Below, one piece after another: positions 33,198-51,375 of a stretch of 64,000 bases of DNA (its first letter is position 1; the number at the start of each line of letters is the position of its first letter). The stretch lies in sequence record MN871440.1; one strand, given 5' to 3'. Made by a program: the position numbers and the translations under genes. The notes under the pieces were generated by a model. The model saw only the letters and a program-made list of their open reading frames with translations, had not been told where the DNA came from and did no database searches.

Positions 33198-33315
33198 ACA
33201 CATTGTCGGGGCGTAGCTCAGACGGATAGAGCAAGTGCCTTCTTATGAACTTTTACGAGAGCACATAAGAAGCACTCGGTCGCTGGTTCGAATCCAGTCG
33301 CCTCGACAATGTGTT
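33198..33315 (+). ncRNA. tRNA-Arg(UCU)-like RNA with a 26-nt anticodon insertion and extended acceptor stem
   Basis: D arm, T arm and acceptor stem intact (33205-33308); AGTGC-CT-TCT-[26 nt]-AA-GCACT; no CCA. Confidence 0.75.
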
Positions 33316-36348: not shown

Positions 36349-36456
36349 GTCTTTTTCTCGGTATGCCGTAAACCTAACGTGGAAGTGAACCCTTATTCGG
36401 TCTTCGGACTCAACCGGCAGTAGCATGAAACAATGTGGGGATATCGAGAAAAAGAT
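36349..36456 (+). ncRNA. structured ncRNA, family B copy 1
   Basis: 16-bp terminal stem; motifs shared with 39086-39216. Confidence 0.6.
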
Positions 36457-36526
36457 TGTTTACTCTATTAAAACACTGTGCTATCATTATCACATGCTCT
36501 TAAAGTAGAGCATAAATAAAAGATAG

Positions 36527-36555
36527 TTTACAGCGTTGATAAACCGTGATACAAT
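36527..36555 (+). promoter_or_regulatory. sigma70-like promoter
   Basis: TTTACA-17-TACAAT; predicted start coincides with the RNA at 36563. Confidence 0.75.
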
Positions 36556-36562
36556 CTTTATA

Positions 36563-36616
36563 AGGCTCCGTTCAGCAATCAAAACTTTTCTGCGGATGAA
36601 AAACAAAAGTGAGCCT
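36563..36616 (+). ncRNA. family A (helix + TTCAGCAA) RNA, copy 1
   Basis: AGGCTC-CG-TTCAGCAATC...AAAAGT-GAGCCT. Confidence 0.65.
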
Positions 36617-36644
36617 GTTAGAGTAAAGATTTAAGAAGTCTTTA

Positions 36645-36673
36645 TTTACAATCACTAAATAGTAGTGTATAGT
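36645..36673 (+). promoter_or_regulatory. sigma70-like promoter with an overlapping CTAAATA
   Basis: TTTACA-17-TATAGT. Confidence 0.7.
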
Positions 36674-36685
36674 AAACAAAGATAA

Positions 36686-36748
36686 AGAGTGATTTCAGCA
36701 ACCAACTTAAAAAGCCATTATTTTGAAATAGCCTATAAAGTTCACTCT
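36686..36748 (+). ncRNA. family A RNA, copy 2
   Basis: AGAGTGA-T-TTCAGCAACC...TAAAGT-TCACTCT. Confidence 0.65.
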
Positions 36749-36774
36749 GTTTCTTATTTGCAAGTTGTTATTTG

Positions 36775-36855
36775 GGAGACGTGGCTCAAAGGTTGAGCGA
36801 CGGACTGTTAATCCGTGAGGTTAACTCTATGCTGGTTCGAGTCCAGCCGTCTCCG
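36775..36855 (+). tRNA. tRNA-Asn(GTT) with a long variable arm
   Basis: ACGGA-CT-GTT-AA-TCCGT; 14-nt variable region; ends G-CAA. Confidence 0.88.
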
Positions 36856-36878
36856 CAAATAACAATTTACCGTGCTAC

Positions 36879-37150: not shown

Positions 37151-37213
37151 GTTTCTACCTAGTAGGAAAAATGAACTTACCCGACAGTAGTTCAATGTTC
37201 TTTGAAAATGCAT

Positions 37214-37356
37214 GGATTCACTTCTGCAACCAATACAAAACTTCAAATCTACTATTAAAAGATAGCACTCCTTTACTTCGGTAGTTGGATGTGCGGCTGA
37301 GAGGGAACAGCAGGTAAAAGTAACGTGGGTTAGTCACCACTCCCGTATGTGAATCC
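37214..37356 (+). ncRNA. family A RNA, copy 4 (multi-hairpin)
   Basis: GGATTCAC-TTCTGCAACC...GTGAATCC. Confidence 0.55.
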
Positions 37357-37425
37357 GAAGACTTGCGTAGGTACTTGCATAAAGTGCCTATTCTAATGTA
37401 TACTTGCGAGTATCTATTAGAATTT

Positions 37426-38622: not shown

Positions 38623-38698
38623 GCGCTGTTAGCTCAATTGGTAGAGCTGCGGACCTTTAACCGATAGGTTGGTGGATCATACCCACCACGGCGGACCA
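38623..38698 (+). pseudogene. degenerate tRNA-Lys(TTT)
   Basis: Good D arm and CCA, but the anticodon stem is out of register (apparent 1-nt deletion), T loop is ATCATAC and 1:72 is G-G. Confidence 0.7.
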
Positions 38699-46260: not shown

Positions 46261-46839
46261 ATGGCAAAGCTGTTTTTTACACATGCCGCGATGAATGTTG
46301 GTAAGAGTACACAACTGTTACAAGTTGCATACAACTACAACGAGCGCGGTCAAAACGTACTGTTGTTTAAACCTGCTTTTGATACCAGAACTGAGGGAAC
46401 AATCGGTTCTCGAATCGGGATCAATCGCGAATGTCGTTGTGTGCATCACAACGAAAATATGTTTACTTTGATTGAGAAAGAGAGTAAACTACAGAAAATT
46501 GATTGTGTACTTATTGACGAAGCACAGTTTCTAACTGAAACTCAGATCTGGCAACTGTCTGATGTAGTCGATAAGCTCGATGTCCCTGTTATGTGTTACG
46601 GACTAAGAACTGACTTTCTTGGTAATTTGTTTGAGGGTTCAAGAACTCTTTTAGCAATCGCTGATGAAATCAGACAGTTATCCGGGATCTGTGACTGTGG
46701 AAGAAAGTCATGTATGGTAGCTCGCATTGACGACGATGGTCGAGTTATTAAACGTGGTGAACAAATTTGCATTGGGGCTGAACAACGATATATTTCGTTC
46801 TGCCGCAAGTGTTGGAAAGAAAAACTGTCTCACGAATGA
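46261..46839 (+). CDS. tk: thymidine kinase
   Basis: AAMNVGKST; LIDEAQFL; CYGLRTDF; C-terminal Zn-binding Cys pairs. Confidence 0.97.
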   Translation: MAKLFFTHAAMNVGKSTQLLQVAYNYNERGQNVLLFKPAFDTRTEGTIGSRIGINRECRCVHHNENMFTLIEKESKLQKIDCVLIDEAQFLTETQIWQLSDVVDKLDVPVMCYGLRTDFLGNLFEGSRTLLAIADEIRQLSGICDCGRKSCMVARIDDDGRVIKRGEQICIGAEQRYISFCRKCWKEKLSHE

Positions 46840-46874
46840 GACTATTTTAAACAAACCTGAAAGAGGTAATTTCT

Positions 46875-48317
46875 TTGTCTAAGTTTATGAATGCAATGAC
46901 TCAAGCGCAAGCACTGGCACGTACCGCTAACGGTGCAGTTACTAACTATACCACTGGTGATAAGTGTCTGAATCTGTTTTCTCAAATCGGTTCCGCTCGC
47001 GGTAAAGATCTGAGTTCCATGTTTGTGGAAGCTTACACCGAATCTCCGGATTGGGCAGTTCGTATTCTGCAATGGGCTCGCGATATTCGCGGTGGTGCTG
47101 GTGAGCGTGAACAGTTCATTCGTCTGCTGAAACTGCTGGCACATCGTCATCAAGTTGACGCTACCGTCGTTCTGATGAACACACCGGAAATCGGTCGTTA
47201 TAAGGACGTTGTTTCAATGATTGGTACTCCAATCGAAGATGCTGCGGTCGCTATCATGGTGGACGCGATTCTGATCAAACAGAACGGTCTTGCTGCTAAG
47301 TGGGCTCCTCGCAAAGGCAAAGAAGCTGGTATTCTGGCCAAAGCTATGCGTATGACTGCTAAAGAGTATCGTCAGACAATCGTCCGTATGTCGAACACCG
47401 TTGAACAAAAAATGTGTGCTCGTCAGTGGGATGGAATTGATTTCGGTAAACTGCCGTCTGTTGCATCTGCCCGATATCAGAAAGCATTCCTGAAAAATGC
47501 GAATGAGCGTTATGTTGCTTATCTTGAGTCTCTGAAAAAGGGCGAAGCTAAGATCAACGCTGGTGCTGTGTACCCGTATGACATGATCAAATCATTGCGT
47601 ACCGGTTCTTCTGTTGCTGCTGATGCACAATGGAAAGCACAACGCGACTGGATGGCTGGCTCTACTGAAAACGTAATCGCAATGGTTGACGTTTCTGGCT
47701 CTATGAGCACCCCGACTGCCGTCGCTGGTCTGTCTGCTATGGATATCGCGATCTCTTTGGGTCTGTATATCGGTGAACGCTCTGGTGGTGTGTTCAAGAA
47801 CGAAGTGATTACCTTCGATGATAATCCTCAGTTCTACAACATCAAAGCGAAAGGCGATGATCTGCAAAGCATGGTGAATCATCTGGGACGCGCTCCGTGG
47901 GGTGGTTCTACCAACTTCGCTGGTGCATTCAAGATCATTCTTGATCGTGCCGTGAAACATCGAGTTCCGCAGTCTGATATGCCGTCTATGATGGTTGTAT
48001 TGTCTGACATGGAATTCAACGTTGCAGACGGCGGTTATAGCGGATACTATCGTATGCGTGACCGCGAACGTACCAACTTTGAGGTGATTCGTCAGACTTA
48101 CCGCGATGCTGGTTACGAAATGCCGAAACTTGTGTTCTGGAATCTTTGCCCGCGCCCGACTAACAATCCGGTGACCAAAGACGATCAAGGCACTGCGTTG
48201 GTATCTGGTTTTAGTCCTGCAATCATGGAGACAATCCTGAGTGCAAAAGAGTTTAACCCGATGCAAATCATGCTTGACAAGATCATGAGCGACCGATACG
48301 TCGGTATTGATTTCTAA
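46875..48317 (+). CDS. DUF2828-family Ro60/TROVE-like protein with a C-terminal vWA domain
   Basis: RTANGA, WARDIRGGAGERE, LAAKWAPR, KINAGAVYPYD; MIDAS DVSGSM...GSTNF...LSDMEF. Confidence 0.85.
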   Translation: MSKFMNAMTQAQALARTANGAVTNYTTGDKCLNLFSQIGSARGKDLSSMFVEAYTESPDWAVRILQWARDIRGGAGEREQFIRLLKLLAHRHQVDATVVLMNTPEIGRYKDVVSMIGTPIEDAAVAIMVDAILIKQNGLAAKWAPRKGKEAGILAKAMRMTAKEYRQTIVRMSNTVEQKMCARQWDGIDFGKLPSVASARYQKAFLKNANERYVAYLESLKKGEAKINAGAVYPYDMIKSLRTGSSVAADAQWKAQRDWMAGSTENVIAMVDVSGSMSTPTAVAGLSAMDIAISLGLYIGERSGGVFKNEVITFDDNPQFYNIKAKGDDLQSMVNHLGRAPWGGSTNFAGAFKIILDRAVKHRVPQSDMPSMMVVLSDMEFNVADGGYSGYYRMRDRERTNFEVIRQTYRDAGYEMPKLVFWNLCPRPTNNPVTKDDQGTALVSGFSPAIMETILSAKEFNPMQIMLDKIMSDRYVGIDF

Positions 48318-49680: not shown

Positions 49681-49993
49681 AATGCTCTATCTGCTGATAA
49701 TCGGTCATTTTGTGGCCGATTACGTCTTGCAAACTGATAGCATTGCAAGAGGAAAGAATCCTATCAACTCACCGCTCTATGGAGTGCATTGGCTTTACTG
49801 GCTAACTGCGCATAGTGCTACTCATGCGCTCGTTGTTTACATTGCAACCAAGAGCGTCTGGCTGAGTTTGACAGAGCTTGTAAGTCACTGGATCATCGAT
49901 TATGCTAAGTGTAATGGCAAAATCGGATTACACCAAGATCAGGCGCTACATATTTTTTGTAAAATTTTGATTGCTGCCTGTTTTATCGCTTGA
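49673..49993 (+). CDS. DUF3307-family membrane protein
   Basis: GHFVADYVLQ; AHSATH; HWIIDYAK; DQALH. Confidence 0.8.
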   Translation: MFEMLYLLIIGHFVADYVLQTDSIARGKNPINSPLYGVHWLYWLTAHSATHALVVYIATKSVWLSLTELVSHWIIDYAKCNGKIGLHQDQALHIFCKILIAACFIA

Positions 49994-50044
49994 CAACTAA
50001 ATCGATGTCTCTATAATGGGGACATCAACTAAGAGGAAGTTAAT

Positions 50045-50534: not shown

Positions 50535-50665
50535 TTTGTTGTCGCGATTAGTTCAGTGGGAGAACACCTTTGATCGCAAAGAAGTATCGAGTACGGTTCG
50601 AATCCGTTATAGTGTGGGCACATCGAGAAACGTCGTTGGTTCGAATCCAACATCGCGACAACAAA
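50535..50665 (+). ncRNA. tRNA-like RNA with two T arms
   Basis: 14-bp terminal stem; D arm; GGTTCGAATCC occurs twice. Confidence 0.7.
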
Positions 50666-50666
50666 C

Positions 50667-50799
50667 AACATTATGCTGGCGGTTCGTCTAGTGGTAGGAC
50701 ACTGTAAAATTCATTCTGACAAGAATGTTTTCCGCAATAAATAATCGCCTGTTAAGCCTGTAACGCTCGGTTCGAATCCGGCACCGCCAGCATAGTGTT
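50667..50799 (+). ncRNA. tRNA-like RNA carrying the permuted family A motif
   Basis: 17-bp terminal stem, Glu-like D arm, T arm; insert CATTCT-GACA-AGAATG-TTTTCCGCAA. Confidence 0.7.
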
Positions 50800-50809
50800 G
50801 TGAAAATTT

Positions 50810-50929
50810 GGGGAAGTAGCTCAGTGGTAGAGCAGTAGACGCAAAAAGCGGAATCTGAGAAGATTCTTTACAGCAAGCCAACGCAAATTAAACTATTGGT
50901 CGCGGGTTCGAGTCCCGTCTTCCCCGCCA
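50810..50929 (+). ncRNA. tRNA-like RNA with CCA and a 54-nt anticodon insert carrying the permuted family A motif
   Basis: Canonical acceptor, D and T arms; insert GAATCT-GAGA-AGATTC-TTTACAGCAA. Confidence 0.78.
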
Positions 50930-51258: not shown

Positions 51259-51375
51259 TCAGTTAAGATAAATTTAAGCCACCTTCGGGTGGCTTTTTTG
51301 TTTTTAGTGCTTGACGTTGATATCGTGATATGAGAATATAGCTACATCGAAACGAAACACTCTGAGGAAAACATC

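Follow-up and report, generated by a model that had tools for sequence, protein, structure and literature searches.

What is the role of a gene that has the outward form of a transfer RNA (tRNA) and carries a long additional structure in its anticodon arm? The question is raised by RNA 3, a tRNA-shaped gene in a 64,000-nucleotide (nt) stretch of sequence record MN871440.1, which was analysed as a whole and is referred to below as the window. It derives from a T4-like phage of Aeromonas and is 100% identical to both AsFcp_4 and AsFcp_1, with 99% identity to PX29. With moderate confidence, RNA 3 is regarded here as a non-decoding, tRNA-scaffolded and Y-RNA-like partner that would dock a phage Ro60-like protein of the DUF2828 family. 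It is likely to be a tRNA mimic of this kind because its conserved element adjoins Ro60-like genes in many phages. The reading draws on the anatomy and covariation of RNA 3, the family to which it belongs, the association of its element with DUF2828 genes, the Ro60 fold of the modelled protein and homology to the YrlA topology after permutation, while the processing of RNA 3, its binding by DUF2828 and the function of the resulting ribonucleoprotein (RNP) are what we infer.

Anatomy of RNA 3

RNA 3 matches the Rfam tRNA model RF00005 from end to end (54.3 bits, E-value 6.5e-11, gathering score 29), with 54 nt standing in the alignment where the model has 9 positions. An earlier note on this DNA, which had described a cloverleaf with CCA and normal arms, is confirmed in coordinates as in anatomy (Table 1). 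ARAGORN in its default run did not call the gene, and its public annotation is inconsistent, being a two-piece tRNA-Leu in PX29, a 122-nt tRNA-Val(CAC) in Aeh1 and absent from other records.

The earlier note had further proposed that a 54-nt domain takes the place of the anticodon loop. Fifty-four nt do separate the two strands of the anticodon stem, but the loop is not cleanly replaced, because the last 7 nt (AAAUUAA) hold the anticodon-loop position; the extra module of approximately 45–47 nt is set 5' of this degenerate loop. It opens with a linker almost identical to that of an RNA from mycobacteriophage Wilder and continues with a short capped helix, a spacer and a single-stranded core. 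The stretch 50851-50876 is an exact fit to the ACNGCAA unit associated with DUF2828 genes, described below, and the structural detector for this unit picks up RNA 3.

The structure is kept with compensatory changes in seven related Aeromonas phages, for example in the T stem, where GCGGG/CCCGU becomes GUGGG/CCCAC, and the combination of tRNA and module is far beyond chance. A decaying tRNA pseudogene with a chance insertion would account for the non-canonical loop and for the conflicting GenBank annotation given above. However, the arms and the module helix are held by compensatory substitutions across phages that are approximately 85% identical, and the module is conserved in unrelated phages. 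This covariation in arms and module helix effectively refutes a pseudogene, to which we attach a negligible probability.

A family of module-bearing tRNA-shaped genes

A narrow DNA pattern for the module retrieved 63 IMG/VR stretches, and a covariance model, R1, scores members of the family at 60–113 bits (113.5 bits for RNA 3) and ordinary tRNAs at 60 bits or less. By these pattern and R1 searches the same module is present in at least 56 distinct long tRNA-shaped phage genes, including those of unrelated phages, and the insert itself is matched in Lahexavirus 4_4572, Aquaneticvirus APT65, a 735-kb uncultured phage and KVP40-like Vibrio phages. The common module consists of an A-rich linker, a helix of 5–8 base pairs (bp) topped by C-U-[GNNA]-A-G, 3–4 nt, the single-stranded ACNGCAA and a variable linker, and is bordered by A/U-rich single strands. 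Its helix is 98.2% paired across the family, with compensatory change in 6 of 6 pairs, as against 38–49% pairing in slid controls, and its top C-G and U-A pairs hardly vary. The 5' hairpin CGC-AAAAA-GCG was rejected as a general trait of the family, being only 64% paired. Rfam 15, at gathering and permissive thresholds, returns tRNA or nothing, and no match of the Y-RNA type, for RNA 3, the Wilder RNAs and the stand-alone RNAs described below.

Mobile insertion was considered by searching for a module-less allele of one tRNA body. The module was present in 11 of 11 occurrences of this body, the anticodon of which varies (GUC, GUU, UCU, GCC), and is therefore an integral, inherited feature rather than a sporadic insertion.

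A canonical anticodon stem-loop can be restored in 38 of 75 long tRNA-shaped genes when 1–3 nt after the D arm are joined to 2–4 nt before the loop (stem of at least 4 bp, U33, R37); in these genes the module splits the 5' strand of the stem. The restored anticodons correspond to Asn, Tyr, Asp, His, Glu, Arg, Lys, Val and Ile and are isotype-consistent (G37 after NGG). Because of the many members with canonical anticodons, excision or licensing stays alive as a model for the wider family. Under this model many members (Asn, Tyr, Asp, His, Glu, Arg and others) would be true tRNAs that decode, with a module for a Ro-like protein splitting their anticodon stem. The Ro60-like protein would hold them, gate them or direct their maturation, excision would free an active tRNA together with a Y-like RNA, and RNA 3 would be a derivative that has lost decoding. 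We regard this as doubtful.

Several members have 8-nt loops at the anticodon position (e.g. AUUCAUAA, AUUUCCAA, AUCGAAAA), the odd-loop members being found in L008 (5011-5134), L135 (3447-3571), L095, L114 and L134 and in the RNA 3 orthologues of L002 and L004. In addition, A34 anticodons occur in otherwise canonical loops, namely AUU in L130 and APT65 and AGG with G37 in 4_4572 and nt-1.

The residual loop and decoding

The residual loop of RNA 3, AAAUUAA, has A at position 33 and an A.A mismatch at 31-39, and a 7-nt loop with U33 and a purine at 37 on a 5-bp stem is not present. In close orthologues the loop reads AAAUCAA or is extended to the 8-nt AAAAUCAA and AAAUUCAA, so that its length is 7 or 8 nt, its triplet is AUU, AUC or UUC and the anticodon is not conserved. 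ARAGORN in intron mode gives differing calls for the orthologues: Cys, selenocysteine (SeC), Val, Arg, Pro or Met. A loop that is non-canonical and drifting, with a mismatched or weak closing pair and without a consistent anticodon among orthologues, supports the conclusion that RNA 3 is probably unable to decode, on which the earlier note was right.

RNA 3 could also be read as an interrupted tRNA gene, in which an intron-like insert of approximately 45 nt is removed by some unspecified endonuclease-ligase pathway of phage or host to give a decoding tRNA, possibly with DUF2828 taking part. T4-like phages encode RNA ligases and polynucleotide kinase. The 38 of 75 long genes with a restorable stem-loop are consistent with such a pathway, as are the CUGUUAA loop of the neighbouring RNA 2, which is invariant among orthologues, and the ‘enigmatic introns’ described in megaphage tRNAs (10.1101/356790). 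RNA 3 without its module, however, retains AAAUUAA with A33 and an unconserved triplet, and a systematic excision search (5-bp stem, U33, R37) failed in RNA 3 and in all of its orthologues. A permissive Rfam search of RNA 3 gives tRNA only, with no group I core or known ribozyme detected, and a splicing endonuclease is not found as a consistent neighbour of family members. The absence of a module-less allele among the 11 occurrences also speaks against interruption, as does the presence of the same element outside tRNAs, where there is nothing to splice. An interrupted gene is thus considered unlikely.

The earlier note had also suggested a nuclease decoy, for which specific support is absent. 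Here the tRNA body would lure a host anticodon nuclease, decoying or inhibiting it, while the altered arm is either not productively cleaved or cleaved harmlessly. Known anticodon nucleases target tRNAs of the GUN, Glu, Lys and Arg classes. Among the restored anticodons of the family, GUN (Asn, Tyr, Asp, His) is frequent, as are Glu, Lys and Arg, and anticodons switch rapidly within one tRNA lineage, both of which would suit a decoy. On the other hand, RNA 3 offers no recognisable anticodon loop as bait, PADLOC finds no match among the proteins neighbouring RNA 3, and the stand-alone units, the units in 5' untranslated regions (UTRs) and the link to DUF2828 would all be left unexplained. A decoy is accordingly judged very unlikely, and the best-supported part of the earlier interpretation is the non-decoding, DUF2828-linked mimic.

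Association of the unit with DUF2828 genes

The association was sampled in 80 DUF2828-seeded IMG/VR loci, in which ACAGCAA is enriched within 1.5 kb either side of the gene and on its strand. The unit was defined structurally by a helix ending in C-U(-G) and (A-)A-G, a G at -8, a 7-nt register and then single-stranded ACNGCAA. Its density within 1.5 kb on the DUF2828 strand is 3.47 per 10 kb, compared with 0.09 on the opposite strand and 0.3–0.5 farther away, and it is present in 50 of the 80 loci (Poisson p ~5e-77).

The stand-alone units share a layout of AAG, a helix strand, 2–4 nt, ACAGCAA and a partner strand ending in CUG. In 36 of 56 units the partner pairs perfectly over 6 bp and has a G after it, compared with 10.7% at random positions, and the helices show extensive covariation. 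The stand-alone helix corresponds to the embedded module helix with its ends swapped; the AAG-N7-ACAGCAA register is common to both, and the open C-U-G / A-A-G termini of the stand-alone form are joined in the embedded module by two extra loop nucleotides. Three settings are evident. In several loci the units lie within hairpin loops directly before the DUF2828 Shine-Dalgarno sequence, where they resemble an autoregulatory operator. Elsewhere they form tandem small RNAs approximately 30 nt after the DUF2828 stop codon, with a covarying GGUUCC/GGAACC stem, or they lie between ordinary tRNAs, as in the Felix-O1-like phage garuso.

From the side of the tRNA-embedded family, DUF2828 is the most widely common neighbour; it occurs in 10 of 54 loci, in every case on the same strand and at 0.4–2.5 kb. 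The unrelated cultured phages 4_4572 and APT65 carry the embedded form near DUF2828, again on the same strand.

The ACNGCAA unit could instead be an RNA signal for a factor other than DUF2828, such as a host RNase processing site or the target of another phage factor, with the proximity to DUF2828 arising from a shared location among tRNAs and early genes. This would fit the frequent adjacency of DUF2828 genes to tRNA arrays, the units that lie between ordinary tRNAs (garuso; window 36500-36760 and 37223) and the A/U-rich single strands beside the module. It fits less well with the sharp peak of same-strand units within 1.5 kb of DUF2828 and the approximately tenfold fall by 1.5–4 kb, with the several units that overlap the DUF2828 ribosome-binding region, or with an association that is found in phages of Actinobacteria and Proteobacteria alike. 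We therefore hold a signal for another factor to be improbable.

The predicted fold of the DUF2828 protein

The proposed partner of RNA 3 combines DUF2828 with a DUF7788/vWA domain (Table 1) and is assigned by Pfam to DUF2828, not to TROVE; neither NCBIfam nor PADLOC has a model for it. A PDB sequence search gave marginal TROVE matches only, and a search by fold was therefore needed. The AlphaFold (AF2) model, with a predicted local distance difference test score (pLDDT) of 83, gives a full-length match to Ro60/TROVE structures. All of the top 11 Foldseek matches in the PDB are Ro60/TROVE (E-values 2e-8 to 2e-6, template modelling (TM) score ~0.6), the best being 9kop and 9l5y, the Ro60 of Thermus phage phiLo. 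The window DUF2828 protein thus models as a full-length Ro60 fold. Homologues with DUF2828 and vWA form more than 7,000 clusters and are present in 694 of approximately 50,700 phage genomes, including Felix-O1-like, Listeria P100-like, Staphylococcus and Campylobacter phages and mycobacteriophages. They typically head tRNA arrays, as in the Felix-O1-like phages, and in mycobacteriophages they carry the annotation ‘Ro-like’.

With the module identified as the element that clusters around DUF2828 genes, and with DUF2828 predicted to adopt the Ro60 fold, comparison strongly favours the protein-tethered tRNA mimic that the earlier note had put forward with DUF2828 as its partner, the binding itself being a prediction.

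Proposed mechanism and opposing evidence

RNA 3 would share with RNA 1 and RNA 2 a transcript that starts from the strong promoter at 49990, and would be excised by the host tRNA-end machinery, with RNase P acting at the 5' end and the CCA already encoded. It would then fold into the tRNA L-shape, with the anticodon arm presenting a recognition module that comprises the helix with C-G, U-A and G.A at its end, the short spacer and the single-stranded ACAGCAA. This module may be the cognate element of the phage DUF2828+vWA Ro60-like protein. If Ro60 and its RNAs are a guide, the helix would lie on the outer surface of the ring, with the single strand inside the central cavity or close to it. Nuclease resistance and correct processing may come from the tRNA body, which could possibly also tether a tRNA-binding host factor. 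During infection the resulting RNP could serve RNA surveillance, repair or decay, for instance through gating of the ring or, as in Ro60-Y RNA-PNPase complexes, through recruitment of a host exoribonuclease.

A number of observations weigh against this mechanism. The DUF2828 gene lies 2.5 kb upstream of RNA 3 on the same strand, where the typical unit distance is 1.5 kb or less, and five open reading frames (ORFs) together with the gene's own terminator separate the two; in nt-1 the DUF2828 gene and the RNAs are approximately 15 kb apart. Only 2–3 of the 80 DUF2828-seeded loci contain the tRNA-embedded form, and DUF2828 adjoins tRNA arrays in 35 of the 80, so that co-location may be partly indirect. 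Approximately half of the family has perfect canonical anticodon hairpins, which would be superfluous for a pure scaffold. A position weight matrix (PWM) built from the flanks of stand-alone units places the 63 embedded modules as a group near the 99th percentile, while the score of RNA 3 is weak, within the top 3.5% of window positions. Finally, the Ro-binding motif of YrlA RNAs, GNCGAAN0-1G, is absent from RNA 3, the nearest sequence being GACGCAA at 50838-50844.

Genomic setting and other features

RNA 3 is the last of three tRNA-shaped genes in a predicted transcription unit, which runs from the promoter at 49990 through a 158-aa ORF, RNA 1, RNA 2, RNA 3 and a 92-aa ORF to the terminator at 51276. 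RNA 2 belongs to the same family, and its canonical CUGUUAA loop is invariant among orthologues, with the stem split by the module; removal of the module restores a canonical stem-loop with one mismatch. RNA 2 would be redundant for decoding, because the window has a separate tRNA-Asn(GUU) at 36775-36856 (+), a gene of 82 nt with a variable region of approximately 14 nt, unusually long for the isotype. RNA 1 has an acceptor of 7–10 bp, a D arm, a short CUUUG-AUCG-CAAAG hairpin and two T-arm-like hairpins, ACGGUUCGAAUCCGU and GUUGGUUCGAAUCCAAC. It is kept in Aeh1, Ah1, phiWae14 and PX29, where it is annotated as ‘tRNA-OTHER’ or ‘tRNA-Ala’.

Table 1. Coordinates of RNA 3, its parts and associated features in the window.
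Feature	Position	Strand	Description	Support
RNA 3	50810..50929	+	tRNA-shaped, encoded CCA, module in anticodon arm	Rfam tRNA, model R1, orthologues
RNA 3 acceptor	50810-50816 with 50919-50925	+	7 bp, then G73 and encoded CCA (50926-50929)	
RNA 3 D arm	50819-50833	+	normal	
RNA 3 anticodon stem	50835-50838 with 50893-50896	+	GUAG with CUAU, 4 bp (5 bp in relatives), encloses 54 nt	
RNA 3 5' linker	50839..50850	+	A-CGC-AAAAA-GCG, weak local hairpin	
RNA 3 module helix	50851..50866	+	GAAUCU/AGAUUC, 6 bp, GAGA loop; top pairs C-G, U-A, then G.A	
RNA 3 spacer and core	50867..50876	+	UUU spacer, single-stranded ACAGCAA (core 50870-50876)	
RNA 3 3' linker and loop	50877..50891	+	degenerate loop AAAUUAA (50885-50891), A at position 33	
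RNA 3 T arm	50902-50918	+	normal	
RNA 2	50677..50793	+	same family, core UCCGCAA at 50731, CUGUUAA (Asn-GUU) hairpin	R1 83.8 bits
RNA 1	~50538..50668	+	tRNA-shaped, two T-arm-like hairpins, without ACNGCAA module	conserved in relatives
Predicted promoter	49990..50017	+	perfect sigma-70 consensus, ORF-RNA1-RNA2-RNA3-ORF unit	consensus match only
Intrinsic terminator	51276..51295	+	closes the RNA 1–3 unit	
DUF2828 + DUF7788/vWA protein	46875..48317	+	480 aa, proposed partner	Pfam, PHROG
Stand-alone units	36500..36760	+	non-coding stretch before main tRNA array, partners ending CUG	

The stand-alone units before the main tRNA array have cores at 36530 (ACAGCGU), 36572 and 36695 (UCAGCAA). Non-coding stretches with units extend over 36440-36775 and ~37205-37360 (+), before and within this array, and a weaker unit at 37223 has the core UCUGCAA and a distant partner, GAAUCCg. 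Plain ACAGCAA is not enriched in the window (15 occurrences against 10.7 expected), and the structural definition alone is informative.

The leader of the window DUF2828 gene, 46840-46875 (+), contains CCUGAAAGAGG ahead of a TTG start, and resembles the CUG-AAAGGA junction that follows the 5'-UTR units of other phages. The ACNGCAA loop is absent from this leader, because the tk gene ends at 46839.

Two further tRNA-like genes are present in the window. A 100-nt tRNA-shaped gene at 33207-33306 (+), with an Rfam score of 52 bits, has an anticodon stem approximately 9 bp longer than usual and a loop of approximately 15 nt; it represents a different kind of over-long tRNA, as it is without the ACNGCAA module. 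A weak tRNA match at 38623-38695 (+) scores 31.4 bits, just over the gathering score, and is not called by ARAGORN.

Clustering of the ORFs around family members yields no universal candidate for a dedicated processing enzyme. Besides DUF2828, it recovers a PF04308 RNase H-like protein, HNH and GIY-YIG homing endonucleases and an AAA ATPase. The PF04308 protein lies approximately 1–1.6 kb from members in 8 loci (L100, 6374-6943, and 7 others), sometimes together with DUF2828, and is absent from the window. A gene for a 403-aa AAA-type ATPase is located directly 3' of the embedded-module RNA in the unrelated Aeromonas phages 4_4572 and APT65 (L006, 5193-6404; L007, 3870-5081), and a Band-7/SPFH gene accompanies DUF2828 in 4_4572 and Wilder (L006, 9042-9932; L158, 2128-3087).

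Significance

Ro60-Y RNA particles are conserved from bacteria to humans, and the reason for the tRNA mimicry of bacterial Y RNAs is still open. The present comparison ties a large uncharacterised family of DUF2828+vWA phage proteins to the Ro60 fold, as predicted, and to a concrete, putative RNA recognition element. A tRNA and a Ro-binding module appear to have been combined in two arrangements that are circular permutations of each other, and this points to the tRNA shape itself as the feature of importance. The module is present in dozens of tRNA genes that otherwise look normal, including genes with canonical anticodons, and a link between Ro surveillance and tRNA is therefore directly testable in culturable phages, among them the Aeromonas T4-likes, KVP40/nt-1 and the relatives of Felix O1. 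The module also explains genes inconsistently annotated as ‘tRNA-Leu’, ‘tRNA-Val’, ‘tRNA-OTHER’ or ‘pseudo’. Should decoding tRNAs indeed be split by a Ro module, this would amount to protein-guided splicing or licensing of tRNAs in bacteria and phages, possibly directed against anticodon-nuclease defences.

Relation to Y RNAs and other known systems

The link to Y RNAs is provided by mycobacteriophage Wilder, in which three ACAGCAA-bearing RNAs follow a 31%-identical Ro-like gene. The middle RNA has the YrlA topology, made up of a terminal stem, a T arm, an acceptor stem-loop (7 bp, closed) and a D arm. When its acceptor loop is opened, its ends are joined and it is then aligned to RNA 3, the permuted RNA scores 81.5, compared with 48.0 in native order and 43.4 +/- 5.3 for shuffles (z = 7.2). 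The two RNAs then share the same order of parts and a near-identical linker, ACGCAAAAA(A/G)CGGA(G/A)UC. On this sequence comparison, YrlA-type Y RNAs are the probable closest known relatives of the RNA 3 family.

YrlA RNAs mimic tRNA and are encoded no more than 4 kb from Ro60, on its strand (Chen et al., 2014, PMC4201824), and at 2.5 kb RNA 3 stands in the same relation to a gene with a predicted Ro60 fold. Both combine a protein-binding module, putative in RNA 3, with a T arm, a D arm and a 7-bp acceptor. In Mycobacterium smegmatis, RNase P cuts the acceptor-like stem of YrlA, CCA is added and the RNA stays bound to Ro (PMC4201824); RNA 3, with its tRNA-like ends and CCA, appears from its sequence to encode the end state of this processing directly. 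The differences are equally clear. The ends of RNA 3 are natural tRNA ends, whereas those of YrlA pair as the Ro-binding stem and its acceptor is closed by a loop. The module helix of RNA 3 is closed by a tetraloop, its conserved features are ACNGCAA and the C-U/A-G helix top rather than GNCGAAN0-1G, and its proposed partner belongs to Pfam DUF2828 rather than TROVE.

The Ro60 of Thermus phage phiLo binds the adjacent Y-like RNAs Yrl1 and Yrl2 as well as host PNPase (PMC12135203). The window phage likewise encodes a protein with a predicted Ro60 fold and small RNAs nearby; the phiLo RNAs, unlike RNA 3, are of stem-bulge-stem form with a CGAA motif and without a tRNA body, and phiLo Ro60 has marginal sequence similarity to the DUF2828 protein. 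Relative to the known Ro60-Y RNA systems, the protein branch, the RNA recognition element and the permuted, tRNA-native topology are new. The tRNA genes with ‘enigmatic introns’ of the Lak megaphages (10.1101/356790) resemble the present family in being over-long phage tRNA genes with conserved inserts and without a known splicing mechanism. They are set apart by their description, which gives no shared motif or protein partner.

RNA 3 also recalls rnaC and rnaD of T4, small stable RNAs at the end of the T4-type tRNA cluster. The former has a T arm and an acceptor and the latter a C-U-[GAGUA]-A-G hairpin and a CACAGCAG stretch. As homologues both were rejected, since R1 gives 21.5 bits for rnaC and no match for rnaD, and the hairpin-to-core register is absent. 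In T4 rnaD (species 2 RNA, 119 nt; L152, 3054-3172, minus strand) the UUCC-CUGAGUAA-GGAA hairpin has the same C-U-G...A-A-G top, and the CACAGCAG stretch lies farther downstream of the hairpin, out of the family register. A closer parallel in design is the engineered ‘tRNA scaffold’ that Ponchon and Dardel reportedly introduced in 2007, in which an RNA grafted into the anticodon arm of a tRNA is said to be processed and stabilised by the host. RNA 3 similarly carries its module in the anticodon arm of a tRNA but, unlike this laboratory design, belongs to a natural and conserved gene family.
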